Positions 11,790-61,504 are shown, numbered from the stretch's first letter. The stretch: DNA of 61,667 bases from Perkinsus chesapeaki ATCC PRA-425 (GCA_013115145.1 JAAPAO010000151.1:1-61667), one strand, 5' to 3'. Numbers and translations: made by a program. The notes: generated by a model from the letters alone, not told the origin.

Positions 11790-14700
11790 TGTTATTCGAA
11801 CTCGTTGGCTTCGTTCAAGTCCAATCTCAATTGCTCCATCAAAACAGGCTACCGGAAGGCTTCTAGTATTTCGAGGAATAACAATCTGAATAGGAGAGAA
11901 ATGCTTAGGGTGGGATTCGAACCCAGGAGAAGCCAGGGCCTGCAAACCAACTCTCAATGGTATTTCAAGGGTACGTGGAGAACGCTGAAGTGCACTTGTA
12001 GAAGTTATGAAACAACAAAGCTCGTCAAAACGTGATCCACTTAGCGTCATCACAAACCGTCAAATTCCATAGATTGAAAAAAACTAGTACTTCTAAACCA
12101 TCCATTTGGGTACACAGAATGGCTACTAGCAAGCCTGACTCTAAGGAGACCGGAAATGCCCAGTGGGAGGTGCCACCGTGAAGGCATACTCTCGGCCTTC
12201 AATTTCAAGTGACAGCTCAGAGAGATGGTTAATTATGAGAATAGAGATGACTCGACTAAGTTCAAGCGTTCGCCCCCAACATGAGGAGATCTTACTGCTG
12301 AATTTAAGATTGTATTTATCGATTAATGTATAGTAGTTAATTTCTCATATTAACTTCATGAATTTTTATACAGAATGTGCACGTTTTAAACCATCATCTC
12401 CTCTCACTGATTCGGCGGGTAAAGATTCTCAATACATTTACCCTTCTCTATACACTCGGATACATAAGTCAGCTTACCTCTATAGAGGCACTGGCAGGCA
12501 AAACTAATGGGCGTTGATTCAAACCGTGAGGCGCAATCGGTGTTATCATAATACACGGCACGTTGGGGGCGACCTGAAGGAGCACCAGAGATATCTGCCG
12601 CCTGTAGTATCGATATCTTTCAATTGAGGCCGTAATAATCGTAAATGCACGCCCTACAGTACGTCTTGATAGTCCAAGACGATATAGGAAAATATAACGC
12701 TATGAGACGTCGCTATTTTATGAAGTTTCATAAATTTGGTTACCATCCGAGATGAAAGGTTGACTTTTTCAATGTAACTCTTCAGCAGTATTGTGATCGG
12801 TGAAAATAGAAGTGATCTTACACACGTTAGAATAACAAAAATGATCGAAAGGAATGTCCGAAGCAGAGTGCAGCACTTCGAGGAATGTCCGAAGCAGAGT
12901 GCAGCACTTCGAGGAATGTCCGAAGCAGAGTGCAGCATATCGATGAGTGACAGGTAAATGTAACATCAAATGTTATTCAGAGAGATTGTCTTGTCCCTCT
13001 CGTCCGCATCTGCCACAATGAGTCGGAGTTAGTAATATATCGTACTACTCCTTATTAGGATATCTTATACTCCTATATCTCCATATCTTAGAGTGTAGAT
13101 ACTCAAGAATTTGTAATATGGAGTTACTAACTTCACAATAGAATTGTTTACTGACTACCGCGAAACGCTAAAGTTCCATAATCCCCGACGGTGCATCCCC
13201 AAAGCAGTTTGAAAAAGTGAATCTTTCACAAATCCAACATCGTCCTCTAGTTCAGACTCGTTCAGATTTCGGACATTATCCTCCCCTTTCTCACCAGAGA
13301 TCCACCAGCTGCCATGCTGTACGCACTAGATCCGCTCGGTGTGCAAATAATCAAACCATCGCCTTGGAACTGCGTAACGTATTTCCCATCCACAATGAAA
13401 TCAAACCGCTGCAATGCGGCTTTGGCTCCCCTGAGCTTCACCATAATCGATCAACTGGGCGTGCGCTTTTTACCTCGCTATCACGCACTCGTTCAGCACT
13501 TGCTGCTGCAATATAACTTTCTCAGTGACACCGTCAGTCCCCTCGGGAGCGTCTGATGCGTCGATGGGCGACCCGTCCGGACTTGTTCGAATTTTACTGA
13601 TAACTTCACAGCGAAGTCTTGAACGCATTGTGCAAAACACCTGTGGAGCAATAATCGATCACGTGATCGATTTCCATAAACCTTTTCGGAGTAAACATCA
13701 TTCGAAATACCTTATTGTACAGCAAAGTATCCGAGGCACACAACAGGAACTACGCCCAAGGAACTTCGTATACAGTGTAGACGAGGTGTCATGGTGTAGA
13801 CTCTACAACTATACCCATATATATGCCTAGATCTGGAACGTAAGAAGGTTCCCCATCGATCAGAAACGAGAAGCCATAATCGGACGAAATTGAAAACTAG
13901 TAACCTTACTAGGATTAATTTAAAATAAATTACTTTATAGGACTAAGTCTTCTATGAAGTTTTCCAATATGAACGATGTTCGACAGCAAAATGCTTGACG
14001 CCCTAAGATGGGAATGATCCCTCTTGAGGCTGCTGCCGAAAAGACGCCCCTATTGTCGACATCAGGGCACAGCCCTCCATCGTAGTTGTTCCTGTTTACC
14101 TTGGATTTGGCTTCGTCATCCGCTTTAAGGACATTTTCAATCGGCGCATCGAATACCTTATTCAGCAACTCACGATATCTACAAAGGGAAGATACGAAGA
14201 AATGCGAAGGAACTTTTCAACGGTTTGACACCTGAATAAAGGTTAATAAACTTAATTTATCAAACAAGCCGAATATTTCCTCGAATTTTAAGCCTTCAAT
14301 CGCTGTCAGCTTGCCGGAATACGGCAAGCCTCTGGCACCTACTGTGAACACCCTTCGTGCACGCAAACGCAACTCGCGTTACGCAAGTGATATGTTCGTC
14401 TTCGGTCATGCACTACCGGGACAGTTTATCGCGAGGGCAGTGTGTGATAAGCATCTTCGATTGGCTATCGTCGACGAGCCAGATTGAGGAGACTCTCCGC
14501 CGGAGTCTCCGGCCCGGAGACATATTAACATACTTTGTTTTAGTATCGTCGTTTTAACGAACTGCCCAAAGTGATAGCCATGCGAGGTATACTCCCACAT
14601 AAATTACAAACAGTAGCTCCGGAGGACGTAGACTGAACTGCGTTATGTTGCCGATACCATATTCAAAGTTCCCCGATCAATATTAGCTGCCTTTCAGTGA

Positions 14701-16905
14701 ATTGTCTCTAGAACCTGCTACATAAGGCATATTCTGGTACGAAAGATTTCGTAGACATGAATATATTCTTTCCACTTGAGAGGGATACACTTGTAGTCGA
14801 GCGACTTGAACAAAGACAATCCGAGATGGGACTCCCGTTCTGCAAATATCTGCATAAGTTGTCCCAGAATGAGCCAAGTCGTGTGCGTGTCCTCGTCTGA
14901 ATGCATGAGAGCCAAACCAGGAGTGTTCTCGTTACCAGAAACTCGTTAAAACTCCTTAAGACAGTGTTCTACCTCCTAGAGGACTCAATACATGTAGCTT
15001 AGCCTTCCCCATATGGCTTAACTGTCGATAGCGACCTTCTTTTACGAACATGGCATGTGCTCAGCTCAGAAATGTCAGTATAATAGTCACGACTCGGTCA
15101 TTTGCGGATCGTTTCAAGTTCCCATTTGAAATAATTCGTGAACCTTCATGTCTTACAGTCAGGCTCAGACTGGATAGATTCCCTCTGACTTTTCAAGTCA
15201 CAAGGGACCAGTAGGCTGATAAGCGTAGAATGTCGGGCCCGACAGTCTGTCAGAACCCACCAACCGTGTGCTAACCCGCCGCTGTTAGACTCGGTAAGTG
15301 CTCTCGACATCACATTTCCTGATACCCTATCCAGGTGTTGCATCAGTGGGGGCTCTGGAGGCAAAGGCCCGAGCCACCTGCGGTAGGTGACCTACCATGC
15401 AAGGGATGAGTGTCCATAGAGAGGAGAAATTAAAGGCAGTTGAAGGAGAGTGAATCTGTTGAGGGCCTTTCACCGCTTGGTGATATTTCAAAATACCATT
15501 CACCGCTTAGTTAGCACAGAACGACGTGCATGCACGCACATTTAAGCACGAGTCTCACCAGCAGATCATCATCTTTAGTTGTTGTTGTTGTAGCTGCAAA
15601 ACTAATGAATACAAAAAATAACGACTCCAATTCTATCACCCGATAGCCCGACTAGCTCATTTGTGAATCACAGTCTGTGATGCAGGCACACCAGCGGCTG
15701 CAAATTCGCAAAGTTCAGACTCAATTTTTTTACCCGGTATTCGCATTCTTAGTTTTCCAGAAGCAGACCAATAGCTTACTTTTCAAAGGAATGCGGTGTC
15801 AAAAACCCCAAACTCCCTAGGGCGAATGCCACTACTGGCGGAGGCATCAACGACACTATGTTCCCACGACGATACAGGTTATCAGCTGAAACAAGGAGAC
15901 ATCGTAATCCTAAGCGATCTTGCATCGTTAAAAATTCACTATCAGTGCGGAAATATCTGTTGAACAGATTCTGTTCGGCTTCCTCACCGATGAGGACTTG
16001 CGAGCTGGGCTTTCTCATTATTTTATACAGGACTTAAGTGTTTTGACTGGGTATTTTCCGTATTTTCCTCCAATTTTTCTCACGCTTGACTACAGATGTT
16101 GCCAGCCTCGAGCATATTTCTCGCACCGTTTCCTACATACATATTCCACATACAAGGTACTGTATTGATTAGGTGCTAGAGTTTTCTTAACTCACTGAGT
16201 CCACCACGTCGCGAAATCCCCTTATTTTTTCGAAACCATATTTCATATTTTCCATTTCTGTATTGATTCAATACTATTGAAGTGAAACCTTAACCAAGCG
16301 TCAAAATTACACAACAAAATTTTTTCTTATTTTCTTAAATATAAAAAGGATAAATGATAAAATTCCGGCAAAGAATTTCAGTACCATGAAGACTCACTTT
16401 CCAGCCACATGATGGTTCGCAAAACCGTTCCATCTCCTCCAAGGCAAATAACCAAATCGACCATAACAGGCTCACAATCGTACTCATCCGGATCGGTCAA
16501 CATAACTTGTTTTCCGTCACCCATGACCATGCGGACTCCCTGCGTTGAGAAGATGCAAGGTAACACAAGATTACAAGATTCACCTCTCCTCCATCGCCTT
16601 CAATACAGCGCTTTCGGCAACCGAGGCAGTGAAATCGCGAAAGCGGGCCGTGCTCTCGCTGCGCAGCAACTGAAAATACTATGCAGCAAAACCGGCAGAG
16701 AAATAACGGATAAATCGCTTCTGCCGGGATTCGAACCCGGGACCCACCGTCAGGATCATTCGGGTCCAACAAAACACTCAATCCTCGTTCGTCCTTCACC
16801 CAATCTGCCACTTCCACGAGCGCCTTAGTCGCTTCCTCATCTCCCCATTTTTTAGTTACCAAAACCGTCCGAGGCGGCGAGCTCCTGAAGAGGCCATCAG
16901 TCGAT
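11790..16905 (-). CDS. NADK: NAD kinase (copy B), multi-exon
   Basis: Exons encode [111 protein letters not shown] and ACFDG, which are NAD kinase motifs. First and last exons not resolved. Confidence 0.85.
12851..12937. repeat. 31-bp tandem repeat, 2.8 copies, in an NADK-B intron
   Basis: GGAATGTCCGAAGCAGAGTGCAGCACTTCGA at 12851, 12882 and 12913. Confidence 0.95.
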
Positions 16906-17522
16906 TAACCAGGCGGGGTCCAGTAGTGACAAATCCTCTTAGGAAATATAAGATTCCACCCTCTTGCGCACACCTCCAAGAATCTACAATATATTTCCAG
17001 ATTAGTCCAATACAGAGATTCTACGACCGCACAATATAGATTTGAAAACATACTCATACTAGGTCTTCGTAACGAAGTGGCGGAGCTCGCTCAGCTGCTA
17101 GTTTGCTCATTGTTAGTTCGTCATCGCTCGTCTAGTGCTTTGGCGGTGCGAGCGAATGATCAAATCGCGCAGAAACGATTTAGAGAAGAAGTCTTGGGTT
17201 CGAATCCCACAGGCTACATTTTTCTATCAAAAAAAATGTTTTCGCGCTTTTACTCGACACACGGGGTAGCTTTCTTAAAATTGCTAATTTTCTAGGCATC
17301 CCCAGAGAAAGGGGAGTCTTTTCGTTTATATACCATCAGCTAGTTTGCTCTGGTTAACGAGAAATAATTCGTACGCACGCACGGCGAAATGATCCATTTC
17401 CAGATAATAAGCTCCGCTCGCTTCGCTCGCTCCGCAATTTTAGCTCGCTGAAAAGGACCTCGGTTATCTCGATACTTGGATACCAATGAGATGTTCTAAT
17501 TAGCGCACTGTGGAGATTTCTC

Positions 17523-18857
17523 TCACCACGCCAATTTGATGCTTCTTCCATCTCGAACTGGATGACTTCTCGGTAACTGTGGTTCATCCGTCGGTGTATC
17601 TGGACCGTTCAAGCTGCTCTGCGATCGGGCCAGCCAGGCGATTCCCAGAATAAACTCCTCAATGTCGATGGTGCCGGACCTGGAAAAAGATACTGAAAAT
17701 CGATCACGTGATCGATTTTACCTGTCAATGTCGAACGCCTGGAATGCACTCAAATATGTCACTCTTGCTAAGGGAATGCTTGTGTGCTTCTCTGAAAAAA
17801 ACAACTTCTGAAATTTTCCGGATTTTCCCAAAAATATAAGATTTGATCAAGGAATTGGAAAACGTGAGTTTCGATTTAGCGTAATCCAGCAGAGCAAAAT
17901 CTCCGGAAAATTTCTGCCAAGGGAAATTTTTTCTCACCTCCGTAGTGGTCATAATTAAGGAAAAAATTGACCAAGGCATATCCGTTCTCAAAATCGACAG
18001 GATCCAGATGCTTTTTCCCGCGCGCCAGAGAATGGAAAATAGTCGCTAATCGATAAAGGGTTTCATAATTGAAGCCGGTACCTGGCGTTGAGGAAATGCA
18101 AGATTTAGCAAGATCAACAAAATCCTTACGTTGCTGTAGGGATGATACTACTTTCGCTTTATCAAGCCATTCTTGCAGTGCCTACCAGGGGAAAAATGCC
18201 GAAATTTTCCAAAAATTCCCAAAACCATGGAACGCGATAATGACTGATCAATTACAGCTAATTATTGAGCGGAAAAACCCGCCGGAATTTTGCGAAAATT
18301 TTGTCAATTTTCCCTTTCCGATGCACGCAAGGGAAGACGCGCCGACTTCTCCAGACTTCCAAAATAATTTCGAGTGCGAAGCTGACTGTTTCCGAGAAGA
18401 TATGTTCAGAGTAATTCATGAAAACCTAGCATGAAGCTAAGATACTCATACCGGCTTGAGCTCTGGTGAAATATTGCCATCAGGTGAGATTCCCGGAAGA
18501 TTTGCTTCCTGTGCTGCCTCGCGACAGAAATCGATGACCGACTTTGGAGTTAGCGAGCGAGCCAGTGCTGGACTTTTCTGAAAATGAAAAAATGAATGAA
18601 TATTATCAAGTATACCGGGACCGAGAATTGAACCCACGACCTCCCGCTTACTGTATCCTGCCATCCTTGAATCAACCCACTTCGCCGCGGAGTTTTCCTC
18701 TTCCCCTCCGCTCGTGGACTCACTTCCGCGGGTGAATCTGCGAAATCGATCATGTGATCGATTACAATCTTCACTTACTAGAAGTCTGATTTAACGGCAA
18801 AGGAGTCGGTATCGATGACGATGAAGACGGTGTCATATCCGGAGACTCCTCCGACAT
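17523..18857 (-). CDS. EF-hand calcium-binding protein (NCS/calcineurin-B-like), copy B, multi-exon
   Basis: ATG at 18857 (MSEESPD). Phase-consistent exons include LQQRTGFNYETLYRLATIFHSL and AFQAFDIDRSGTIDIEEFILGI (canonical EF loop). TGA at 17523-17525. Confidence 0.75.
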
Positions 18858-19018
18858 GGTGAAATCAGAACAGCTACAAAAAATAGGAAAACGGAAAATA
18901 CGATTAAATGCATGAGAAACCGTCACTGGGATTCGAACCTGCGGCTGTTATTAACCACAACTTCACGCAAGATTATGAAGCCTTGTAAATCTTTGATGAA
19001 TTGTATTTTACAAATAAA

Positions 19019-19094
19019 TCACACACAACCAGGAATTGAACCAGGGACCTTCCGATAGCCCCAAAAACAGTCAGGCGCTCCCCTATCTGAGCTC
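19019..19094 (-). tRNA. Degenerate full-length tRNA-like sequence (Tyr-like, extra bases at the canonical tRNA-intron site), overlapping the NADK-A stop codon; probably non-functional as a tRNA
   Basis: AGCTCAGATAGGGGAGCG-CCTGA-CTGT-ttttggggct-A-TCGGA-AGGTC-CCTGG-TTCAATT-CCTGG: A box, anticodon stem and B box are recognisable; the acceptor stem does not pair. Confidence 0.55.
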
Positions 19095-22000
19095 TCTTGC
19101 CCAATGCAATTTACTCCGCAAACTATGGAACCAATCATCCAAGTGTTGTGTTGTCGATACAAACGGTACCGGAGACATGCCTAACAGAACGAGAAATGTG
19201 ACTCATCCAGTCCACTCGGTCATCACCTTTAGAGAAAACGGAGAATTTAAAATCCAGATTCTTTAACAGACTCAACTTGCCTTCCTTACTATATCAAAAT
19301 CAACCAATAAATTTCCAAAAATTTTCCATGAAACTTTAAAAAATACTGCCTTATACAAAGTATTAAAATTTCCGGAAATTTTCCGAAATTTTCCCCAACG
19401 TACTTGTCGTTATCCGAACTCTGTTTCCCCTATTCAGCTCGATATTTGTTGCTCCATCAAAACTAGCAATCGGCAAGGTCCTCGATTCCTTCGGAATTCC
19501 AACCTGCAATCAAAAGGTCCCTGGTTCGAATCCCCCGGGAGGCATTTTTTACTTCAATTGTTGCTCCTGCTGGTAAAATCAATGGTCGCTGAGACAGGCC
19601 GTGCGGCGCTATCGGTGTTACCAGAATACAGGGCACATTTGGGGCAACCTGAAAAAATGGAAAATTCATGGTTTAATATCTACCTATTTTTTCAACAAGT
19701 TGTTCTACTTGTCGGTAAGGTAGAGTACCAGTCGTTCACCGAGGAAGTACTAGAGCGACGACCGTTACTTCTTCAGAAAATGAAAATTTTCAGTCGATTT
19801 CTCAAATTTTACATAAAATTTTCATCTATGAAGATCCTTGTTGGAGTTCGAGCATGAATGGCAAGCGAGATTCATGGAAAATGAGGAATTCTGAGATTGA
19901 AATGATTATCTGGACAATTGCCAGCCTTCCGCACTTCAATCATCTACAATCGGACAAAAGGGGGAATGTTTTGGAGATGCTAGGCAAGTCTGCTAAAATC
20001 GAACCTCCAACCGCGGTAAATCCACGTGAAGATCATCATGCTACCGTACCCCGGTTATGCTGGTTCGAAAAGTCATCAAACCTGCGAACTGCTCATCTTT
20101 ACTAAGCAGTGGGGCAAATTGAAAGATTGGAGAACATCACAGATTCGGAAGGCCTCAGTAATTTCCTTACCAGACTTCCACCAGCTGCCATGCTATATGC
20201 ACTCGAACCACTCGGTGTCGCTATTATCAATCCATCAGCTTGGTATTGGGTCATTAGTTGGCCGTCAACGTAGAAATCAAACTTGTGAAATGCTGATACG
20301 CATCCTCTAAGACAAAGGAAGAATATAATCGATCACGTGATCGATTTTGACAACTGATAAATGTTTAGAGCGTCTTGAATTTGTTTTACACAGATATCCA
20401 ATCTATGTTTGAATGTATACGTAGTCAAATAATTAGGGAGCCAGCTTTTGAACAGATACTGACTAGCAAACCTAAATCGATCACGTGATCGATTATCTTA
20501 CCTCGCAATCAAGCACTCGTTCAACACTCTGTGGATTCCAAGAACCTTTGGATCTTCCTCAGACTGGATCACTTCACATCGAAGTCGAGACCGAAGCGTG
20601 CAAAAAACTCTCTAAAAGTAAGGAATCTTAGCTTGAACCGTACAAGATACAAACTAGGTGAACTTTCTACCTTCTTTTTTGCTGCCTCGACATCTTTATC
20701 ATCTTTTCCCAGACAATCCTGTACCGGCGCAACTATCACTTGATTCAATAACGTCTTGAATCTACATTGCACCAAACAAAATGCATCCGAACTGCACCAG
20801 AATGACCTAATATACTTATGTCCTAAACAATATCATTTCATTTGCCCTGTTGTACCACACAACGAAGCTATTACAGTACCCGTCAACTGAGGACTGTATT
20901 TACTTCGCCGAGCTAGGCTGCGAAGTTTTAAACATAGAGGGTTTAATTTACGACAATTACATTGCGCACCTCTACATTGCTCAAAACAGTCCTTGGTGAC
21001 GGGTACTGTAACGCTCGCTTCGAAATGTGATCGCCAACGAACCGCCGCATGCTTGATTTAATTTCCCCTCCCAATCTACGACCTTACTACAGCTACTTTA
21101 ATTACAAATGATTCTCCCCGAGGCAGAATGACCGCGTGAAAGAGAAAATATTCCAAGTTAAATTGGCAATTCTGGCACGCGCAAAATTTTCGCTCGCCCA
21201 TATCAGTAACTAGGCATGAAACGGTTACAATATTTTGACAAGTGGGTCTGAACTACCATATGCGTAACATATCCGAAAATGAGCACTAAACTTGTTCCCG
21301 TTGTGAAGTAAGGATATTACTTCAAAATATTCTAAGTTTATTTGGAGGACTGTAGACCAGAGTTGGCCGAGGCGGCGCAAGTGAAGAATATTCTCTTTAC
21401 GTCTGTTCTGACTTTCTTTTTCACTATTCACGAATACTTCACATTATTTCTGCTATCAGATCATAATGGTACGATAAACACTTATAGGTTTACCGGTTTT
21501 ACTTTTTGACCTGAGTTATCCCTTATAACAATGTCCGAAGACACCTGCCGGCTACCTTCTCACCGACTCGATACAGAAGTCATACCATTCATTGCCGTGA
21601 GAAAATCGGTCGGAATTTTTCCGAAATTTTCCTTCCTTGCCAACAGACGACCACGTCGATATATTCGAGCAGGAAGTAGTTTTTGTAAATTACTTAACTC
21701 AGGTAAAAAACAATGCCAATCCTGTCCAGCTGCCGCATGCTGAGATTCAAGTCAGGAACCAACCGCAGCATGAAACAAATCGTCGAGCAATTACGATTTT
21801 TGAAAGGCAGCCTTCGCCCAGTAATTTCACCAATAAGCTCAACAACATATAGCTCTGAACACACCACGTATACTTTGGGCCGTGAACTGAACCAGCCATA
21901 AATTTACCCTTTCGATCAAAAAATCACACAAGACGCTGAAAAATGAAATTTATACTCTTCACCACGCCTGAAAGTGCTCATTCTCGACAGCGATATCCGC

Positions 22001-23355
22001 TAAATACGTTTTTTCTATCAGAATCGAACACACTGCAAATATAAATGATCGTGAATATCTCTCCCAACTTCCCACCTATCAAATGGATGGGGTGTCAGAA
22101 ATCCCAAGCTTCCCAAAGCAAATGCCACCACCGGAGGAGGCATCACAGTCATAGGTCGATTTCCTGGAGGGCTACCAACATCGGCCGGAGAGGCTGGTGC
22201 GTTTAGGTCATCAGCAGAAGCCGGGAGAGCTGAAAATTGACAAATAAAAAACGCTTCGCTCCGCTAGAATCACATTACTAACCCGGAAACAAGAAAAACT
22301 ACAATGAAAAAACGCTTCGCTCCGCTAAGATCACCGAATTTCTCGTTCTATGCATTATACGGTTTTGGCGTCTTTGGAACACATTTTGGAATTTGCTTTC
22401 TATTATATTCCTTTGCACTTTGATTTCTAGTTTTACCAACACTTCTCCCCGTGACATTGAAGAACAAATGTATTCAATTAAACACCCATTAAAAATGCCC
22501 CCACCAGGATTCGAACCCGCGTCGTCTTACATCGTCCTTCCTCCAACCAGTTGATAGTTCTCAATACCGTCCCATCTCCCCCGAGACACACAACCAAATC
22601 AACCATCAATTGCTGATCCGAATTCTGCTCAGTTGCCGACTCCGTATGATGCGAATCATTTTCATTTTCGATTCCATGAGGGGCAAATTCGGCGAATCTT
22701 CCACATCTAGCGGGTGCGATACCACCAACTGACAGATAGAAAGACCAAATCGATCACGCGATCGATTTAAAATGATGTTCAACTAAAATTCTTCTCTCTA
22801 CACGAATTCAATTACTGAGTGACTGATGATATATGAGAATCCCACAACATTTCTCACTCACACCACACCGCTCTCACCAATCTTAGCAACACGAATTTCA
22901 CGTGAAAAGTTGCCCTTGTAAAATTATTTAATCGATCAACCTCCAATCCGTGACAAGACTCCAAAGACCATCTTATTATTCGCAGAATAGTTACACACTA
23001 ACTCATACCAAAACGTAACATTTGACATACAGATATTCGATATTGGCTCCAACTGTCCACGCTTTAGTCTACCTTAAAATACAGTGCCCCAAGGTTTAAC
23101 ATTTTAAGTCAGAGTTAAATAAATATCTTTTCAAAAAGTGAAGTGCAAGCTTCAACCTCCCCCCGATATAGTACCATCCGGATCGTTAGGATCCATCACC
23201 ACACGAATGTCATACGCAGTTTTAAGCCATCTACCAACTTCAAGCAGAGCCGCCTTCGCTCGATTACTTCCCCATTTCTTTGTCACCAATATGACTTGCG
23301 GACGCGAGCTCCTGACAGAGAGAGTCACGCGCCACAAAATTCCGGACACCCTCAT
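19083..23355 (-). CDS. NADK: NAD kinase (copy A), multi-exon
   Basis: Exons encode [116 protein letters not shown] and [18 protein letters not shown]-stop. Start codon uncertain. Confidence 0.88.
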
Positions 23356-45543: not shown

Positions 45544-46731
45544 TCAGCGACATGAAAATCTTTTTTCGCTCAACGGCCAGCAACACACTCTGGGACGACG
45601 ACACTCATGCCTGTCTAGTAAATTCTCCCGAATTCGAGTGCCTATTCTGAACACTACCACACCAATGAACATCGCTAGCAAAGCGATCCACTCAAACCAG
45701 GGCACTTGACAGGAGCCTATAAGCGGCCAATTGATAAGAGACATAATAGCCGACAACGGCAAAGTTAATGTAACACAGAGAAATGCCAGTGTGCTTGAAG
45801 CTGTAGCTAATAAATAATATAAACTAATATTGAATAATACATTGACAACCATATAACAAGTAAAGGAATTTCTGGCGACACTGTCCATCATCAAAAGTGT
45901 CATACCCTCGGTGAGAGTGTTAACCACATTAGTATGACCGATGAAAGTTTCAATTAACAATGAAACGGGCAGGACACTCACCATCCCAATGAAATGAACC
46001 GAGCTGCTCATGAGAAAAACGTTCAAGTCTAGTTTTTCCAAACTGTGACTCCGCGCGTACGTGGTGTATTTGACAAACATGAGCTCTTTTACAACGAAGG
46101 CGCAAGCTTGAATGACCATAGCCAAGGAAAAGAGTAGGTAGCCCGACACACTATTCGAATCAGCAACTTCACCGTCAACGCACTGTAGTATAATAGATAT
46201 CACCGCCACGGATAAGACAATAACAACCGCTGAAAGCTCTTGTAATATGTAAGATGTATGCAGTATAATAACGGACCAAAGCATAGTAGCTGGTACGATA
46301 AACTGTTGTAGAAGCTTGTACATGACTATTGGCATATTCCCTTGAGTAGAAAATATTAAGAAATCCGCGGTCACTTCACACACGGCAGAAATAACTGCAA
46401 ACTTGATATTTGGAAGCCAAGTGATGAAACGAGAGATTCCAGTATGGGTAGTCTGGTTGGGTAGCAGAATCCAGACCAACTGTTCTCGGGGAACTCGACC
46501 GAATAGCGCCATAATCACACAAGAGGTGGCGTAAGTGATAAAGTAGACAATTTCACCAACACAATTGGAGACAACACCGGAATATTCTCCCAACGCAACG
46601 GCTCGTATTTTACCGGTGATGGAGTTGAACGTGCCACATAATACAACCAAAAACATAAAGAAAGGCACCAACGTCCGCAAGGATAGGTTAGTTCTGGATA
46701 GACCGTCATACGACCAGTAGAAGGACATCAA
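45544..46731 (-). CDS. CRT-like (chloroquine-resistance-transporter / DMT superfamily) multi-pass membrane protein, intronless
   Basis: 395-aa ORF with about 10 hydrophobic segments. GNMPIVMYKLLQQFIVPATMLWSVIIL..Y and VNVLFNISLY..SSTLAFL resemble CRT/CLT family motifs as recalled; not confirmed by HMM. Confidence 0.7.
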   Translation of the reverse strand: MMSFYWSYDGLSRTNLSLRTLVPFFMFLVVLCGTFNSITGKIRAVALGEYSGVVSNCVGEIVYFITYATSCVIMALFGRVPREQLVWILLPNQTTHTGISRFITWLPNIKFAVISAVCEVTADFLIFSTQGNMPIVMYKLLQQFIVPATMLWSVIILHTSYILQELSAVVIVLSVAVISIILQCVDGEVADSNSVSGYLLFSLAMVIQACAFVVKELMFVKYTTYARSHSLEKLDLNVFLMSSSVHFIGMVSVLPVSLLIETFIGHTNVVNTLTEGMTLLMMDSVARNSFTCYMVVNVLFNISLYYLLATASSTLAFLCVTLTLPLSAIMSLINWPLIGSCQVPWFEWIALLAMFIGVVVFRIGTRIRENLLDRHECRRPRVCCWPLSEKRFSCR

Positions 46732-48718: not shown

Positions 48719-50328
48719 TTATTCAAGATGGGAGTAACCATTCTGTGAGGAACCGATCGCCGAAACACCCTTCGGCTTCCGGACGTGCGCCTCTGCGTCG
48801 GCGACGTAGACGTCGGCCTCGCCACGCGCGTCCTCCTAAAGACAAAAAAACAAGTCGCGATCGTAGTTGGCTTTATCTTACGGGAGCTGCTCGAAGCTCA
48901 TTGGCCTTCTCAGCCTCGCGAGTATCATTAGTAGGAATCAGAGGTTCAGTCGAGCGCCTAAGATTAACGAAATGACAAGACCAGGAAATGAACCAGGGTC
49001 GTTAGAACTAAAGACGAACGCTCTACCGCTACGCCATAGAAGACTTACTCTGCGTCAGGTAGGCCTGCATCAGGGTTTGATTGTTCTTGCTGGACAATCT
49101 CTGGCGTTTGCACTTTCGGCAAAACTGCTGTTCCCTGGACGACCGGTGTGGCGGTCGCAGTTGCTACCGCTGGTTGAGGAACTTCTATCTTTGCTACCAT
49201 TTCTGGTATGGTTTGTGACAGAGCGTCGACACAATCACGGTTCTGTGTAACCGTCGAGGAGAAGTACTGCGACAACTGAGGGAAAGAGCTTTTGAATACG
49301 AGCTGCTTGCACGAAGAAATGTGAACATCTTTCGAGTAGCCGTAGAAAATACACTCTAAGAGGAGATCTACAGATCGACGATCTAAAATAACGAAGTGAA
49401 AATCGTTATTATTAACGGAAAACCTAATTTATAATTTTCATGGGAAGCATGAGATATTCATGCACTCCAAACGTAGGTTCAATTCATGAATCTCCAGTGG
49501 GTCCCGATGAGGTTCAGCTTAAATCTTTTCGTGAATCCCCCTTAGTATAGTTGAATAGTGTAGAGCCTGGGCAGCCAGTGAGCCGGTCAGGCAAGGTAAT
49601 ACGTTTAACCGAATCAGTACGAGTTAAAAACCATTCTCACCGCTTCGACAATTTCCCCGACATCCTTCTGTCGTCGACCGAGTATGTCTTTGATGTCTCT
49701 GTCCACACTGCGATCTAGACGATCGCAGTTCTCCTGTGCTTCTCTGAACTTCACCAGATTCTGCAAAAAATTTAAAATTTCCGGAAAATTTCCAAAAAAT
49801 TTACTCTGTCCAATTTTTCCTTAGCAGAATCTGAGCTCGATCCGTTCTCAACTTTCTTCTGGTATTTCTTCTGCAAGTCATCCGTCTTGACCTCGTAGTG
49901 CTTCACCAATCCGTGCGCTCTATCTCGGTCAGTCAGATCCGTCTGGGCAATGTAAAGAGCGCTCGCGCAGATGATCGATTATATTAACGCTCACCCTTAG
50001 TGTCTTGATTCGGCCGTCCAGTCTGTCAATCTTGCCCTTGGCTCTCCCGAGACATGCTAGAGAGTTTTCACCGCTATGATTGAAATGCGACATTTGCTCC
50101 GAGAACACAGCGAATGCGGCGGAGGTGTCCTGAGTAGGACAGATTTTGCGTGTTATGAAAAATATCTTCTGATAGAAACCTTTCTTTTATTTCTCCTAAT
50201 CTAGAAGCACGTTGATGCTCTAGGTATGCACTCACCTCACTGCCGGCAGTGGACTCTGTGCTAGTGGAGCTCTTCGGGTCGGCTGCCTCCCGAGAGAATC
50301 TTGCAACATTGAGATATCTCGGGTTCAT
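48719..50328 (-). CDS. Coiled-coil protein, BAR-domain-like, with a low-complexity C-terminal tail; multi-exon
   Basis: Exons give KIDRLDGRIKTLRTDLTDRDRAHGLVKHYEVKTDDLQKK and EKAQENCDRLDRSVDRDIKDILGRRQKDVGEIVEA, followed by a P/T/A-rich tail. BAR assignment is by resemblance only. Confidence 0.6.
48973..49045 (-). tRNA. Degenerate full-length tRNA-like sequence filling a 91-nt intron
   Basis: TGGCGTAGCGGTAGAGCG (A box/D arm) ... CGAC-CCTGG-TTCATTT-CCTGG (B box/T arm), inside intron 48958-49048. Confidence 0.5.
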
Positions 50329-50379
50329 CTGCTGCTGATTGGCGGTGATGTGATCGACTTCCGAGGAAAGTTGCTAAAA

Positions 50380-50452
50380 TAGAGGACGCAGAAATGGAAC
50401 CAGAGGCCTTTGGTATACAAAACCGATGCTTTAACCGCTAGGCTATTTCGGC
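50380..50452 (-). tRNA. Pseudo-tRNA, Thr(TGT)-like
   Basis: GCCGAAA-TA-GCCT-AGCGGTTA-AAGC-A-TCGGT-TT-TGT-AT-ACCAA-AGGCC-TCTGG-TTCCATT-...-TTTT. 5' two-thirds tRNA-like; T stem and acceptor 3' strand decayed. Confidence 0.55.
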
Positions 50453-50680
50453 AAATATTCTCACCAGCAACTTGGAGTTGTAGTCCAATAAATCCTTCCT
50501 CTCGCCGACCAGCGGATCCTCATCAAACTCCTTCACGCCGAACATCTGAGCATCTCGCCATAATTTCGCGGCGCGTGACCGTACTCTCTTACCTTCTCCT
50601 TCATACTCCTGAAGGTCTTGTTATCAAACCATGAAGTCATAATGTTAGTAAATTATTAGCAATAACAAATCTGATGGAAA

Positions 50681-50880
50681 GTTTGATAGGAAATATGTTA
50701 CTAGTGATACGGAGGAGGAGATATAATAGAAAGGAGTTTGATAGGAAATATGTTACTAGTGATACGGAGGAGGAGATATAATAGAAAGGAGTTTGATAGG
50801 AAATATGTTACTAGTGATACGGAGGAGGAGATATAATAGAAAGGAGTTTGATAGGAAATATGTTACTAGTGATACGGAGG
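50681..50880. repeat. 55-bp tandem minisatellite, 3.6 copies
   Basis: Identical units start at 50681, 50736, 50791 and 50846. Confidence 0.95.
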
Positions 50881-51466: not shown

Positions 51467-53063
51467 TTACACATCAAATTCGATCTCCTCTTCCTCTCCT
51501 CCACTCTCCTTGTTCAATCTACCACTCATCAGTCTGACGGCCCATTGGGAGCGCTTATTATCGGGACGATCACCGTCAATTCGACCAACTACAAAGATGA
51601 CATTACTGAGCCAGCAAGAGCAGAAAATAACAATTATCAGTTCAAAATAAGGAACATACGGCACTGCTGCATATTTGTAAAATTCATCGACGGCCCTCCA
51701 CCGAGCCGTAAAATTCTTCGAGGACTCGGCACAGGAAATTAGTTCTTCGAAGCAAAAATGATCCCCTCTCGATAGCAGCTTCGGATACCATGACAGACTT
51801 ATCAGCTACTTGCCGTGAGAGACAGACGATACTTCGGGAAATCAAAGATTTCCCACCCCCTGCTGTGAAGGCGAGGAGAGGACACAGACATTCAAGCTCT
51901 GGTAGGCGGCAGAGACGATTATTATTTTTAAGCAATGCTCTTAAACCTATCAAAACCCGGGCAGATGCATCTGTGAATTAAAAGGAGTCCACTTCGATTG
52001 CCAGGCTAAGTTATTGATAATTTTTACTTCTATTACGTTCTTGGATGACTGGTGTCGTTCAATGAACCAATTTTGAACCAAGTCAGATTCGATTCCAGAA
52101 CTGCTTCTTAAGCGTGAAATGCGACACTGGAATCGATTCTGAATCTCCGTATTGATTTAACGAAACGTAAACTTAATTAACGTAATTTTTACATTATTTA
52201 TTTAACGTAAATTTAAATTTTTTTAGGGAGGCTGATGTTGAGAAAGTCAGGGGGCCATCTGGCCCCACAGACATAACTTCCTCAAGAATTGAAGCACCCA
52301 CATGAAATAATTGCTAAAATGTGTTCTTAGGGTTAAGGTTAACATTGTATGCATTCCACCTGAGCCTTCATTACGACATTCTCGCAATCAGCAGCGTATC
52401 CTGTCGAGTTCAAGTCCTTCCCCGATTACATAACCGAAGCCGGTTCCCTTATTACCAGCCAAGTAAGCATACAACGCAACTCGTACTTTCGACCCTTCCG
52501 CAACAATAACGTACCTTGGAAAGGTCCCAGGTTCGATCCCGGCATGCCGCATTATTACTTTGGCTGCAATAATGCCGGCGGCAATCCCAACTGTTTGGTG
52601 AATTCGATACCGAGAGTGGTGTTGACCAACTGAGGCAGCCTCGATACTACTTCATCGCTGACCTCCGGTGGATTGCACAATCTGAAGGAGACCAAGGTGA
52701 CCTAGAAAATATCTTTTGAAGAACAGGCGAGCTAATGTGTGATATATTTCGATCTTCCTTACTTGAGCAAAGTCTCTGCAATTCTCCGCCAATCCTCCTC
52801 GGTGACATCCGATGGTATGCAAGGAGGATACTTTAGGCATCTGAGTTGATAACCAACAGCAGTGAAGCAGAGAAATCATATCGGACCGGGGTGAATCTTT
52901 CCGAAGTGCAATAGGATTGAACATGCTGCGTGGAGGACTGTGGGGTAGAAGGTATCTTTCCCGAGGCATGAAGAAGGATAGTTTCGAATGAAGGAGAGGT
53001 AGCGATATAATAAAACAGTGTCTCGGCGTCCCAAGTTGGACCACGATGAATACTAAATCTCAT
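51467..53063 (-). CDS. Hypothetical multi-exon protein
   Basis: Phase-consistent exons (IPSDVTEEDWRRIAETLLK|SPWSPSDCAIHR; LLLRKGRKYELRCMLTWL|DLNSTGYAADCENVVMKAQ) separated by short GT-AG introns. Ends and full structure uncertain; no family recognised. Confidence 0.45.
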
Positions 53064-54037
53064 AGGGGCTGTGGTGGGAATGATAATCGAATTACCCGTA
53101 AGAATGTTGTTAAGTTATTGAGTTGCATCAGTGCGTCAAATCAATACAATTAAATTAATGAGAGCTATACACTTTAAACTGGAACTTAGATGTATTAAGA
53201 ATTACAATTGACAAGAATAGCGGCGAGACTCTCCAGCAGACCGGTACTAAAGTGTTAGGGATTTCGGGTTATAATACTACAGAGACTAATAGGCTACTAA
53301 CATTCGTTATATAGCGGGAAATGGTAATAAGGAAGGGAAGATCAAACTGGTCACTTCTGATAGAAAAATGGGAATCCAAATTTTAATTGGATTTTCTTAC
53401 CCTTTCGCTGCAACAAGGACATTCCCGCTTTTAGCGGCTCTAAAGAAATCACGATGAGCCTCATCGAGATTGATATCCGGTAAAGATACGGTGAAGCGAC
53501 CTAATTAAGTATCTTAGGTTGAAGCGTGCATGATACTATAACAAGTTCAATAGTTACCTTTCGGGGATTCCATTCCAGGTGGACATTTCTTTTCGTTGTA
53601 GTTTCGCCAAGTCCACCAAGCAGCCGTCAAAGTCACCGCCGCAACCGCGATGAGTATCTTAGGTTGAAGCAGGTCTTTCGTATATAAAAAAGATTCCTCC
53701 ATTATTAATAAAAATCTTTTAGCGGCCTCAAATGATCCCAGGTTCGATCCTCGGTGAGAGCATTTTTAATGTATTTTTCACATTTTTGGTCGCAAATGAA
53801 GGAGCCAGCAATCCCCTTTCTACGGTCGTGAGTGCTACCCTAAACGCATACGACCTCCGATCTAGTCTGAATCACGCGCTGCGTTACCGACATTATAATA
53901 AAATTATATCTCCTCACTTATGAAAATATCTTCGGTGGAAGAATGTTTGGCACCTAAAATATCTCAGCTTGAAGCATGCATCCCGCAAAAGCATCCTAAC
54001 TTGAAGCATGCATTCTCCTCAGTTAGTAATCATCTCT

Positions 54038-56625
54038 ATGGAATCAGCAACAACAACTCCTACCATTTCCACTCCGAGTCCAGCCAACTTCGACCTCACC
54101 TCCACCGACGACAGTTCCGACTCTACGACTCTGGTTGCTCATCATCAGTTGCACCCACTCAATAAGACTTGGAGCTTTTGGTTAATGTATCAAGCTCAAA
54201 CTAAGGTGATCACTTTACCGCTAATTTCTCCATCTGAGCTTTCTTACCTTCAAGACATTTTTATTTTATTTATCATAATTTTGATGCGGGATATCGTCCA
54301 CGTAGACTTTATATTTTTTACTTCAAGTGGACTTAAACATCGTTATTATTTTATTATTGCAAATTGTATTGTTATGATTTTTATGTTTGTGGGAATCTGT
54401 ACCAAAATCGACCGACAGTAGCGACTTTCTAACGGTATAATGTTACTATGCATATAATTTCACCTGTCACTTCTTTGCATTTCACATTGTGCAGTTTTAT
54501 ATGTTATCGGCTCTCTTTCACCCAGTTAGGATCATCTAACCGAGACTAGACCCATCCCTTCTACTGGTTGACTTCGACCATTTTTACCTATACTTTATAC
54601 GGTCGACTTTCCTCTACCCGCCTTCTCTCGCGCCAATGATCTGTCCTTAGTTCTACACTAGTCATTTTTGGAGATTCTCGCCGAATCCAATTTCATAAAG
54701 CTTCTCTCATTTTCGATCGGAGTGACACCATCACTGTGACGTGACTTGCCGGAAAATTTTCGCTCTTCCCTGCTTCCCAAATCTTTTTCTTTTCTCCTTT
54801 TTTGGTGGAGTTCCTAATTCCTCGGTCAGTCGTCCAGTCTGACCTCTCATCCATCTTCAAGTGGCTCACGGTTGTTAATCTTCAAAGTTGTAACATTCTC
54901 ATACGAATAATTTGCTTTCCTACCGTTACTTTATTTACCGTACGTTATACGACACTTCTTCCTCGAACAGCTTGTATAGTCACAAAGCGGCAGTTACGGT
55001 TTTTGTTTTCATTAAGGAATTTCCAGTAAATTTTTTTGTATATTTACCAGCTCCTGATTCTTGCTCCTCTGCCGGAATTTCGCTTTACTGTATTCCCTTG
55101 ATCAAATTTTCATACCAACTTTTCCTCAACTTCTCCCCTCAGGATAAAAAGGATAATTGGAAAAATACACAGAAGAAGATTTTGGACTTTTCCACCGTCG
55201 AAGATTTTTGGCGAATAGTCAACAACGTTTCGGCGCCGAGTCGACTGAGTTATGCTGACTACAGTGTTTTCCGGGATGGAGTATCGCCGATGTGGGAAGA
55301 TCCAGAATGCGCCAAGGGTGGCCGATGGATTGTGGCAGTTGATCGATTTATGAGACGGGATGCCCGTTCGGAGGGCCAGGAGGAGGTGAGCAACTTTTAG
55401 GGGAGATTCGGTTATAATGTGATATCACTGGATTCGTTCCAGGAAAATGCATCGCCATTTTCGGACAATTCTGTTTTATTTTGGGATGGTTCAAATTGCT
55501 GTGGAGAATTTTATGCTTTCGAGTTTAACTCTCAGTTTGGATCGTCTTTCCAGATTTTGTTAATGTCCCTTTCCAGTGCGTACTAGTGTGCGGTTTTGGG
55601 TTGAGCGATATACATGCTGTTTGAAAATATTTTTTATAAGTATATAAATATTATATAAAAATTTGTTGTTAGTTAATATTTTATTTGGGTATTCCGGTTA
55701 GGAAAATCGATGTCAGTTTGGGTCTCTTAGCATTCGTGAATGATGAGGTGCGGTTTACTTTGTGGGGGTATCGAGTCGGAGGTACTGGAGAGAAATAATT
55801 GTTTTAGTTGTCGAGATTAAGATTGGCAGCGTATCTTCTATTTGCGTGAAATGCATGCTTCGAGCAGATTATCGGGGGGAAAGAAACTACTATCTGGATG
55901 AAATGACACAGGAAGATTGTTAGCGAATCTTATATCGATATGGAATGCACGTTTTAAGCTCATTCTTATTGATGAAATGTACGCTTCAAGAAGATATCTT
56001 TTCCCTGTATGGAGTGCATGCTTGAACCTCTTCTCTCAGGCCTTAGACGAGAGCTGGCTTAATGTCGTTTTGTCTCTTATTGGAGGCGCTGCTTATCATG
56101 ATGAAATTCGCGGAGAAGATTTGCCTGTTTGCGGTGGAGTATGTTCCGTCCGAAAATATAATTGCAAAATCGCCCTTTGGGTTGGGACGTCCGAGGAAGG
56201 GTTACTCTTAAAAGCAGGAAAGCAGTTTCGGAAATCCTTGAAGTAAGGGGGTAATCGATCGATTGATCGATTTGGTATAGCGTCTTATTTTGTAATGCTT
56301 GCGAATATTGAACCCGCGAGGGGCCGCATTCGTTGGTCATTCTTACCATGTATATGGAAGAATATACTAGCAAGAAAAGCTATGAGTTATATCAGGGTAT
56401 CTTAGCTTGACGTGCGCAAGATGCAAAATAGCTCATCGTTACTCCTTCAGGCCTCTCATCGATTATATGACCAATTTGGATAACAACACCTCTTCCGAAG
56501 AAGAAAACTCCCGTCGTCCTGCAAGGCCGTCAGTTCGATCGAAATCAATTCAGTTTGAGTTCTTCTCCAATAACATAAAATCGGCTGCTCCTTTGGAGCT
56601 GCCATTCGTCGAGGAGGAAGAATAA
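54038..56625 (+). CDS. eIF4E: Eukaryotic translation initiation factor 4E family protein
   Basis: Exons 54038-54205, 55143-55385, 56040-56242, 56281-56291 (11 nt) and 56432-56625. Motifs HPLNKTWSFW, FSTVEDFW, YSVFRDGVSPMWEDP..GGRW, DESWLNVVLSLIG, KIALW. Confidence 0.92.
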
Positions 56626-57626: not shown

Positions 57627-60600
57627 ATGCTAACCGAAGATGACAGTCGTCGGCAGGCTCGGAAATATTCTGGCAATTCTTTCATGCAACAGCGGCTCAC
57701 AGCATGGCAACCTCTCTTGAGTCCTGGGTATTAATGGGAAGGGAGGGAATATACCTCTTAACATCGTTTATCACCAGTCATTTCATTACTTTCACTAGGG
57801 CAGATCAGGGTTGCTAAAAGTGGCTCAAGATTGGTGTGAATCGCTAAATCGCTGCCGATACTTAACCTCTTTCTTCTACTATGAATTTCGTCTACCCTAA
57901 TATTAAATATGTTTTTGAGCTTGTCGTACCACTTCCGCATTGTTTCTCTCTTCGGCCCTATTCAGAAAGGAAAGACGTAAAAAGATACTTCCTCGAGAAA
58001 CTGTTTTTCAGTTTTTTCAGTCTTCAGAAAATTTCTATTTTTTTCAGGTGGGTCATCGCGGCATTCGTTGGATTCGGAGCAGTTTTTTTGGCAATGGGAA
58101 CTGGGCTGTCGGTTGTAAGACTTGAAAGTCTCGTGGGATTTTCTATCGCTTGCTCCAGTGGTGAGAAGTATCTAGATATAGAATCTCATGTTGAAGCGTG
58201 CACGATGCAAACTAGCTTAGCCTCCAGGGACTTCCTGTTTGAAAGCCTATTCAACCTTCCTTATCGGATGGTAGAAATATATCTCTTCACCAAGCTCATT
58301 GCAAGCTTTTTCGTCACGTAAAATACAATCCGACCTCCCTTGATTTTTTTAATTTCGTGGCGCGTGACTATTTCTCATCCAGGCAAATGCGTCGTCTGGT
58401 GAGTATACGAAGGAGTACACTAGATTAAGTGCGAACGGAGTTGCAGTTGTTGAGATTGAAATTGGACAGGACATGCCAGCGGCGTCGACATACCTGTAAA
58501 AAGGTGTCCGAATTATTGAGGGTTTGATGTGTAGTTAAAGGGAGAGGATTCTGTAAGATTTCAGTGAGACTGTGATAGAGGAATTAAGTCGCATGTGTGA
58601 GTTGAATGGTCTCATTACGATTGGTTTAGAACAACACATTCTTTTATGGTATGATTGCCATTAGGAACATCCTTCGATTTTCGAGAAAGATATTTCTGTT
58701 TGGGATGGGTTGGCTAATATTATCAGGTATTACGAGATTGGTGATTTTTATCAGAATCATAGAAGGTTTGTTACGTCGAGATCTGACGAACAGCTAGCCG
58801 GTGATAATCGATCACGTGATCGATTTGGCAGGGTGGCAATATGTAGATCCCTCGAGCGTGAAATTCGGCGAGAAAGCTCCGTCGGAGTGCGAGCCTGCTA
58901 CAGTTGGCAGTAATGGAAAGGTGTAGTTATCCTTGCGCATGCGTGCAAAGATATTTTATAGCCCAGCTTTTAGACTTTACCCTTGCGGGTTGGTGGCAAG
59001 ATCGATCTTTAATGATAGCTTTGTAGTCGATATAAAAAAGAGGAGTTCTTCGAATGAGTGGAGGAGGGCAGAAGTGAACGAAGTGGGTATTAATCTGCTG
59101 CTGTTGCCCTAGCAGCAGCAGGTAGGAATCGTCTAGGCTCACAGAAATACAGTATGTTCATCGTGGAACACTGTAATGGACTTTATGCCAGAAAATATAT
59201 TCCTTTAGCCTTCTGGTTTGATGGGGCGTGGGTTCGATTCCTGGCTGGGATATCTAGAATTTTTGGAGGAAATCGTTTTTGGGAATCTCACCGAGTTTTG
59301 TGGCGCTCCTTTGAATTTTCGCGAAATTTGCGTAATTTTTCGGAAAAAAATCGAACACTGTTTCAATTTCAACACTGGTAACTCATTTTGAGTGTGAGGG
59401 AATTACTTCATTAACGAATTTAGAAATCGATCACGTGATCGATTTATTCCTCAGTCGGCGGAAGTGATTACGTGGAAGGCGGACTTGGCTCATAAATTTA
59501 AGAATTTGGTTCCGAGTGAGCAAGTTGCTGGCGGGAAGATCCGAAATGATGAAGCGTTCGATATGTGGCTGACGAGCATCTTTCCACCGGAGGTTTGTGT
59601 ATGATGGGCGGGTGGTTTTAATGCGACCTGTTTTGTATCTTACCAGCTTCGACTCTAATAGGAATCATGTAACATAATTTATGTTGGTATTTCAAAGTGT
59701 ACCGGCAAACCTGTTCCCTTGTAGAGATACCCTTCGATGACCCTGTGAGACTTTCTTTCTGCCAAGCTGACCTATTTTGTATCTTTCTGGCATATTGCAA
59801 TAAGTTGAAGTCGATTCCCGAAATTACGCATTGTGTCGAGGGGGACAGCGGGCGTAGCGAAAACCGAGGCATGTGGAGCACGCTAGAATGGCCTTCGAGT
59901 TGACCTGTAGTATGCAAGTATCATGCATGCTTCAAGTTAAGATACCATCCAGCGTTGTAGCAGAAGGTCGGTATGAGCCGATATTTGTGTTGAGTAGAAA
60001 AGATCGAACAGCGGCTTGCGACGGATATGATAATGAAGGTAAAGGGGGAAGATGTAAATTCACTAAGGTAATAGGAGACAATAAGTCTACCTATTTTGTA
60101 TCCTGCACGCTTCAACCTCAGGTACCATTTGGTGTAGAGGGCAGAGACCCTGAGTTCCTCTGTTCTGATGGGTACCAACGGAAGCCCAACCCTTCAGGTC
60201 AAAAAACCGGAAAAATTTTTCCCGAAATTTTTTTCAAGGTTGTTTTAACAAGTCCTAATTTTTTTCAGGTTGGGGAGTAGAGAATGCTCATTTTGTCAAC
60301 TGGATGCGACCGGCGGCGAAATCAACATTCCGGAAAGTTTACGGAAAATTCGTTGAGGAACTGCAAGTGAGAGCAAGATTGCAAGATTCCTGGCTTCATC
60401 CTTCGTAGGAAGGTGATGTGATACGGGTGACAATTTTCGACAACTTCCCTGTGTATAGTTTCGGCGGTAAGAAATCGACTGTCGTGGCGAGCGCTACTTG
60501 GTTCGGCGGAAGCAACAAATATTTGAGTTTGGCGTATCTTTTGGGCGGTGGAATATGTTTGGTGTTCGCGGCTATTTTTGGAATTAGTAATATGTTGCTG

Positions 60601-60645
60601 AAGAGGAAGTTCTATGATACGGATTATCGCGATTGGGAGGATTGA
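57627..60645 (+). CDS. CDC50: CDC50/LEM3 family P4-ATPase (flippase) beta subunit, multi-exon
   Basis: FMQQRLTAWQPLL, TM1, YYEIGDFYQNHRRFVTSRSDEQLAG, YPCGLVARSIFNDSF, NAHFVNWMRPAAKSTFRKVYG, FGGKK..SATWFGGSNKYLSLAYL and TM2. Includes a 16-nt micro-exon at 58383-58398. Confidence 0.93.
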
Positions 60646-60898
60646 AGGTTTGTAATCGAAAGGTCGATGGTTCAATTCTGGCCGAGGGTATTTTTCATGC
60701 TGTATTCTTGTCGTTAATAGTGAGGCTTTGCGTTGGGGGTTTATGACGGTTGAGGGAATTTTCGGAAATTTTTGGATTTTTTTTCGTAGATGAGAAATAA
60801 TCAGGAGGGGTTTCGTAGACAATTAAAAACTCGAGAATTTTTTCCCGAAATTTTTGACGAATTTTTTTCCAGTATTTCTGTTGTTTATTCTTTCCTTA

Positions 60899-61439: not shown

Positions 61440-61504
61440 ATTCGAAAGTGAAGGTTTTGCATTTCGCTGATAAACGTATGTCGTCGAGTGGTGATAAATA
61501 GGCG

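Follow-up and report, generated by a model that had tools for sequence, protein, structure and literature searches.

Perkinsus species are alveolate parasites of oysters and clams. The window analysed here is a stretch of 61,667 nucleotides (nt) from Perkinsus chesapeaki ATCC PRA-425 (GCA_013115145.1 JAAPAO010000151.1:1-61667). It carries genes for NADK, an EF-hand-like protein, a BAR-like protein, eIF4E and CDC50, together with a CRT-like open reading frame (ORF), and scattered among them, mostly in introns, are 15 short pieces derived from transfer RNA (tRNA). NADK and the EF-hand-like gene form a unit present twice, as an old tandem duplication (11.8-19.4 kb and 19.4-25.3 kb). The single copy in the corresponding P. 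olseni locus (L004) is orthologous to copy A; six pieces lie in the region of copy B and two in that of copy A.

The original prediction for this DNA had listed about 15 pieces with a B box and T arm, and all 15 are real by motif enrichment, by a single register and by a covariance search. The B-box consensus used for extra TFIIIC (ETC) and other TFIIIC sites, GGTTCRANTCC, has eight exact matches in the window, where 0.22 would be expected; the count was never as high as eight in 100 shuffled sequences, and tolerating one mismatch raises it to 26 (7.5 expected). T-arm stem-loops, defined as a 5-bp stem around a TTCRANN loop, number 11 in the window against 2.8 in simulated sequence, nine of the 11 falling among the predicted sites. 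When the 15 sites are aligned on the T loop, a single ungapped register accommodates all of them: variable loop (consensus AGGTC), T arm, acceptor 3' strand of 7 nt, discriminator base and a run of T residues (T-run). The T arm with its B box, the acceptor 3' strand and the discriminator thus stand in the register of a tRNA, as expected of tRNA-derived sequence. The acceptor strand is different in each of the 15 copies, the discriminator is mostly A, and a T-rich run follows immediately in most. A covariance model made from the alignment of these same sites (R1) recovers all 15 in the window, with E from 1e-9 to 1e-3, and nothing beyond them below E=1. The earlier list thus has no omissions, and 1-11.8 kb and 22.6-48.9 kb are true gaps, in agreement with the statement that no pieces occur in 0-11 kb or 23-48 kb.

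None of the 15 pieces has CCA after the discriminator base, so the source was a tRNA gene or a primary RNA polymerase III (Pol III) transcript, not a mature tRNA. Three copies are full length; the remaining 12 are truncated at the 5' end and lack the 5' half. The anticodon stem is kept in three or four copies, and the others begin in the anticodon arm or the variable loop. In the near full-length copy at 19016-19094 the anticodon stem is paired at 5/5 positions, and in the full-length copy at 48973-49045 the acceptor is unpaired. T stems are 75% paired and their covariation is not above that of shuffles, which indicates copies in decay, with no upkeep of their structure. Covariation in the T stem was accordingly rejected as a mark of selected structure.

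Functional tRNA genes housed in introns can be set aside. ARAGORN finds no intact tRNA gene in the window, and the Rfam tRNA model matches 50387-50452 (over model positions 1-71) and 48980-49037 below its gathering score of 29 bits in both cases (scores in Table 1).

Pairwise identity among the pieces was measured by segment, and their 250-nt flanks were compared all against all with the cores masked. Identity is 0.64 over the variable loop and T arm, the part common to all tRNAs, and 0.31 over the acceptor strand and 0.27 over the flanks, both about random. The masked flanks have only paralogous exons and an unrelated palindrome in common; no tRNA-unrelated body or tail common to the copies was found in them. 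With acceptor strands hardly more alike than flanks, the pieces yield neither a single consensus nor a small set of them, and the prediction was right to call them mutually different and not one family of short interspersed elements (SINEs): a single such family is ruled out by the unrelated flanks and near-random acceptor strands. The 15 sites are tRNA-derived and come from many sources, with a common 3' end.

Ten of the 15 pieces are intronic, eight at intron ends (11913, 16727, 18624, 19523, 22507, 48984, 50390 and 52530) and two in the interior (56304 and 59231). Among the five non-intronic pieces, one lies just after the CDC50 stop codon and four lie in spacers or upstream regions; coding sequence contains none of the 15 (Table 1). 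A piece is present in roughly 8 of the 38 introns mapped in five genes, or about one in five. The prediction of eight pieces at intron ends is reproduced, two placements being given by RNA, four by ortholog or paralog alignment and two (18624 and 52530) by reading-frame logic only. For 52515-52558 the frames permit an intron, yet a TAA TAA stop stands at the same spot. Some pieces do supply the GT or AG that is used, as had been claimed, for example in the 49-nt intron 19504-19552 and at two 5' splice sites, 16745 and 22530, where the piece begins at +3/+4.

Table 1. Positions of the tRNA-derived pieces and of two other recurrent intron motifs in the window.
Feature	Position	Strand	Placement	Score and basis
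tRNA 3' piece	11897..11945	-	sense, 16 nt before 3' splice site of ~590-nt NADK-B intron e8|e9	R1 32.1 bits; junctions by paralog comparison
tRNA 3' piece	16711..16749	-	sense, from +3 of 5' splice site of inferred 75-nt NADK-B intron 16671-16745	R1 35.8 bits; reading frames
tRNA 3' piece	17185..17224	+	spacer between NADK-B and EF-hand-like gene, antisense to both	R1 36.4 bits; ORF map
tRNA 3' piece	18608..18652	-	sense, 5' end of inferred 74-nt intron 18578-18651	R1 35.2 bits; ORF continuity only
tRNA 3' piece	18913..18951	-	spacer downstream of NADK-A	R1 26.9 bits
Near full-length pseudo-tRNA	19016..19094	-	spacer or 3' end of NADK-A	R1 35.1 bits; anticodon-stem test
tRNA 3' half, anticodon loop to T-run	19504..19552	+	antisense, whole of 49-nt NADK-A intron e8|e9	R1 37.8 bits; frames
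tRNA 3' piece	22491..22530	-	sense, from +4 of 5' splice site of ~370-nt NADK-A intron e2|e3	R1 39.2 bits (top score)
91-nt spliced intron, full-length pseudo-tRNA 48973-49045	48958..49048	-	sense	Rfam tRNA 19.5 bits; transcript-contig joint
91-nt spliced intron, full-length pseudo-tRNA 50380-50452	50374..50464	-	sense	Rfam tRNA 26.2 bits; transcript-contig joint
tRNA 3' piece	52515..52558	+	antisense, whole 44-nt intron or start of 3' untranslated region	R1 35.6 bits
tRNA 3' piece	53729..53767	+	~260 nt upstream of eIF4E spliced-leader acceptor	R1 35.3 bits
Decayed tRNA 3' piece	56288..56326	-	antisense, 49 nt inside spliced 208-nt eIF4E intron 56243-56450	R1 20.8 bits; RNA-contig joint
tRNA 3' piece	59219..59257	+	sense, interior of ~350-nt CDC50 intron	R1 30.5 bits; exons by tblastn with CDC50 homologs
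tRNA 3' half from anticodon loop	60649..60695	+	sense, 4 nt after CDC50 stop	R1 37.6 bits; Pfam CDC50 profile ends 60642
ATCGATCACGTGATCGAT palindrome	13654-13671, 17699-17716, 18745-18762, 20328-20345, 20476-20493, 22749-22766, 31732-31749, 58807-58824, 59426-59443			
GGAAATTTTCCGGAAATTTT-like motif	49761-49804, 60197-60267, 19363-19393, 26805-26870, 17896-17915		recurrent in introns	

The pieces had further been said to lie, all of them, in the intron-rich blocks. Their absence from 23-48 kb stands; the implied contrast does not, since that region is not intron-poor. At 26.5-32.7 kb it holds multi-exon genes conserved with P. olseni, and these are free of pieces, which rules out that the pieces mark the only intron-rich blocks. 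A Pfam scan of the ORFs in 23-48 kb gave nothing informative.

Splicing of the host introns was read from joints in transcript contigs of two RNA data sets of the same species, both small. The BAR-like gene, on the minus strand, is joined across six GT-AG introns of 91, 365, 44, 52, 106 and 91 nt, and its frame is unbroken across all of them. Both 91-nt introns consist of a pseudo-tRNA with 4-12 nt before it and 5-12 nt from the T-run to the AG. In the eIF4E gene, on the plus strand, the contigs show a spliced intron of 208 nt at 56243-56450, which brings the hosts proven to be spliced to three. None of the runs holds RNA for the NADK region at 15-21 kb, so the NADK junctions rest on homology.

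The eIF4E contigs also carry 23 non-genomic letters ending GCCATCTGGCTCA ahead of 54025. A spliced leader of P. marinus, PmaSL2, has been published (PMC3101222); the GCCATCTGGCTCA-ending leader matches its 3' part, which makes ~54025 a trans-splice acceptor site. Downstream of eIF4E, one RNA contig links opposite strands at 56574/56841, which may reflect an inverted repeat or a chimeric assembly.

The loci around the P. olseni and P. marinus homologs of the CRT-like ORF are syntenic with the window. They contain NADK with its EF-hand-like neighbour and a gene with an exon ending '..FRDK', as well as a multi-exon gene that corresponds to 29-32.7 kb, CDC50 and the terminal part of the BAR-like gene. 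NADK exons there reach up to 100% protein identity to NADK-A, and the tandem paralogs NADK-A and NADK-B have nine exon blocks in common. In all five cases that could be tested, the position of the host intron is also found in an ortholog or paralog. For three of the five, either no piece is detectable in the partner intron (22507 and 16727) or the piece there is a different one (19523/11913). The positions common to P. olseni are e1|, e2|e3 and e8|e9 of NADK and the last BAR-like intron.

The e8|e9 intron of NADK is the most instructive. At the same codon boundary, NADK-A has an antisense piece and NADK-B a different, sense piece; in two P. olseni strains the intron is 53 nt long and holds the NADK-A piece, likewise antisense, with a B-box core identical to that of the window at 11/11 positions and a diverged acceptor part. 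Since e8|e9 is common to the paralogs, the position is older than the paralog split; the antisense piece, being common to P. olseni, is older than the species split. At e2|e3 of NADK-A, P. olseni has an identical 5' splice site (..CGAT|GTA) and no recognisable tRNA piece. At e1| of NADK-B the 5' splice site is common to NADK-A and P. olseni, both without a piece, and the NADK-B piece runs from +3. On these alignments the pieces at 22507 and 16727 are confined to this lineage or to a single paralog. At the last BAR-like intron (48958-49048), P. olseni has an intron of ~55 nt in the same position, with a core identity to the 91-nt intron of only ~45%; it may be a shortened version of the same pseudo-tRNA.

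Two further comparisons include P. marinus. After '..FRDK', P. marinus has an intron with its own nearly complete pseudo-tRNA (R1 34 bits); the window has an intron of the same position and phase without a piece, and the P. olseni intron keeps a probable remnant of this pseudo-tRNA, its T arm deleted. After the CDC50 stop codon, tRNA-like sequence stands in the same register in the window, P. olseni and P. marinus; the three copies are strongly diverged and the B box is not conserved among them. As a background, introns of these species are ~70-75% alignable. R1 pieces of at least 30 bits number 13 in the 62-kb window, 0 in ~50 kb of P. olseni and 1 in 18 kb of P. marinus, so the load seems heavier in the window species than in the loci of the other two. 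In P. marinus CDC50 (L003 268-319) a change of frame needs an intron between '..WFV' and 'QVPFG..', where the window (60090-60120) is a continuous ORF; no tRNA pieces are involved in this presence/absence difference.

The host position is therefore older than the piece, or independent of it, in every testable case, and the proposal of a new system that seeds splice junctions is not supported by the comparison. The more modest part of the original prediction is supported: repeated capture from many different tRNA genes or pre-tRNAs, with survival only where the insert is tolerated.

The pieces lie mostly in introns, three of the host introns are spliced, and host intron positions are conserved. 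The best reading, and on balance a probable one, is repeated, probably RNA-mediated insertion of pre-tRNA copies into existing introns, untranslated regions (UTRs) and spacers, followed by decay. The descriptive side of this reading has good support: each insert is the dead copy of one among many tRNA genes, either complete or lacking some of its 5' part, and it closes with the discriminator and the Pol III T-run. Reverse transcriptase would prime at the oligo-U 3' end of the primary Pol III transcript, an early stop would leave the copy 5'-truncated, and the copy would integrate at a nick or break. Whatever the route, insertion into the non-coding DNA of Perkinsus genes has recurred over a long time, before and after the species split; in these compact genes the targets are mostly pre-existing short spliceosomal introns, besides 3' UTRs and spacers. 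Once in place, the copies erode through substitutions and deletions, and the position of the host intron does not change.

The pieces bear the signature of 3'-primed reverse transcription, in that their 3' end is fixed at the transcript terminus and their 5' truncation varies, and the RNA-mediated route is the most likely one. Since the introns are often 44-110 nt long, an insert of 40-75 nt fills most of its host, often abuts a splice site and sometimes supplies the GT or AG. Adjacency to splice sites can largely be put down to the same arithmetic, because a 40-75-nt insert in a 44-91-nt intron must reach both ends. To judge from the compared sequences, the result is an unusually dense genomic litter; intron creation is not demonstrated, and the introns appear to have been there first.

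Several observations weigh against this account. No target-site duplications or poly(A) tails were found at these old copies, so RNA-mediated insertion is not demonstrated; 52515-52558 and 19504-19552 show only near-repeats at their edges, explained by the AG|GT splice consensus. No intact tRNA gene was found in the window or in loci L001-L004, and the pieces can thus be neither matched to a source nor dated. They are also strongly clustered, with 15 within 22 kb and none within 39 kb; the empty 39 kb include intron-rich conserved genes, and random litter does not explain the clustering. Finally, both sense truncated copies that have a partner intron for comparison (2/2) begin at +3/+4 of a conserved 5' splice site, and this junction, present even in a ~370-nt intron, is not predicted by passive insertion.

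This junction invites a bolder proposal, which we regard as doubtful though worth keeping in view: pre-tRNA copies may be a main raw material of Perkinsus introns, through an entry linked to the splice site (at +3/+4 in the sense orientation, with the T-run after GT in the antisense), rebuilding or replacing old introns and maybe founding new ones. All three sense truncated copies at intron 5' ends start a few nt from the 5' splice site, one of them in the ~370-nt intron, and in the two antisense whole-intron copies the T-run stands right after the GT. By a rough estimate, uniform placement would give the junction geometry in about 1-2% of cases, for a small sample chosen post hoc. If true, splice-site-linked entry would define a new class, based on tRNA, among the elements that shape introns; should the link to the 5' splice site hold genome-wide, it would hint at insertion tied to splicing or transcription.

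It is unlikely, in our judgement, that the pieces were captured at the DNA level, as fragments of tRNA genes used as filler in double-strand-break repair or moved by ectopic recombination in the way of organelle DNA. The lack of poly(A), target-site duplication and CCA would fit, as would a terminator present as in gene DNA. Such capture predicts a variable 3' flank and truncation at either end, however, and here only the 5' end varies: similarity ends at the T-run in most copies, and identity beyond the run falls to 0.27.

Somewhat less probable again is that the pieces are selected elements, whether TFIIIC-binding B boxes of an ETC-like kind, hairpins aiding the splicing of short introns, or RNase P/Z marks at gene ends; the first and last of these had been offered as alternatives in the original prediction, and both fare poorly. 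The 11/11 B-box core in the NADK intron beside a diverged acceptor part, the tRNA-like piece just past the CDC50 stop in three species and the strong clustering all point towards selection. Yet introns of these species align at ~70-75% anyway, so the conservation of the NADK piece, seen in one orthologous pair, is not clearly above neutral. Moreover, the B box varies among the three post-stop copies and is lost there, the P. olseni '..FRDK' intron has lost the T arm, T stems are incompletely paired with covariation no better than shuffles, and truncated copies offer RNase P/Z no 5' acceptor strand.

Least probable, to our mind, are tRNA-derived 'introners', in which a pre-tRNA fragment landing in an exon brings its own splice signals (read in antisense, the T-run with AC gives GT(A)n and the CT of the anticodon loop gives AG) and so creates a new intron: the whole-intron cases 19504-19552 and 52515-52558, the two RNA-proven 91-nt introns and the GT or AG inside or at the edge of pieces would suit this, but 5/5 testable positions are common to a paralog or ortholog, three partners have no piece or a different one, five pieces are non-intronic, and convincing target-site duplications were not found.

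Other features of the window concern its introns and its remaining ORFs. An 18-bp perfect palindrome, ATCGATCACGTGATCGAT, occurs in nine copies against 0 expected, and the copies that could be mapped are in introns. One, at the start of the NADK intron e6|e7, is also present in P. olseni in altered form. The palindrome may be a second kind of small intron-resident element or a putative binding site with a CACGTG core. The GGAAATTTTCCGGAAATTTT-like motif makes up most of the RNA-proven 44-nt intron and most of a CDC50 intron whose position is common to P. marinus. At 1521-2399 and 4899-5780 lie two near-identical intronless ORFs of about 290 amino acids with a weak DUF6740 match, apparently a recent duplication. 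The CRT-like transporter (45544-46731, intronless) has ~50-55% identity to its syntenic Perkinsus counterparts, against 96-100% for NADK and EF-hand exons, and is either fast-evolving or a paralog. The window ends (61390-61667) in low-complexity, G+C-rich sequence that translates to long runs of proline or glycine.

The origin and turnover of intron sequence is an open question, and the pieces provide a datable marker for it in an alveolate parasite, as well as a natural test of the minimal sequence needs of introns of 44-91 nt. Full-text searches of the literature on introners, tRNA-derived introns, and Perkinsus introns, tRNA pseudogenes or SINEs returned no account of the pattern.

The known systems each resemble it in part. 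Tailless tRNA retropseudogenes of therian mammals are 5'-complete and 3'-truncated in loops by internal priming (Schmitz et al. 2004; Noll et al. 2015, PMC5322556), and they are flanked by target-site duplications of 8-35 nt (PMC5322556). The Perkinsus pieces are likewise short, scattered copies of many tRNAs, unprocessed ones included, cut in single-stranded regions and without poly(A). Their polarity is the reverse, however: they are 3'-complete to the Pol III terminator and 5'-truncated, and they differ further in having no visible duplications, in their alveolate host and in lying mainly in very short introns.

SINEs derived from tRNA carry a tRNA-unrelated body or a tail derived from a long interspersed element (LINE). 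The pieces share with them a tRNA-like sequence, A and B boxes in the three full-length copies, and an interspersed distribution with frequent occurrence in genes, but they have no body, LINE-derived tail, common flanks or consensus. The ETC sites of yeasts are isolated B boxes. The pieces, too, are B-box matches outside functional tRNA genes, a likeness of sequence alone; unlike ETC sites, they hold a whole T arm, acceptor strand and terminator.

Introners and introner-like elements of Micromonas, Aureococcus, fungi and dinoflagellates form near-identical families that create introns at new positions (PMC9860276). As in introners, the inserted sequence makes up all or nearly all of a short spliceosomal intron, whereas every Perkinsus copy is different and all five testable positions are common to an ortholog or paralog; an intron made of a given sequence is not the same as an intron created by it. 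Introns are also reported to have arisen from captured organelle DNA or break-repair filler in Daphnia and in a nucleomorph gene. There, as here, unrelated cellular sequence was captured in genes and tolerated because it is spliced out; in Perkinsus, by contrast, the source is a single class of RNA, the 3' end is fixed, and the density is very high for the five genes mapped.

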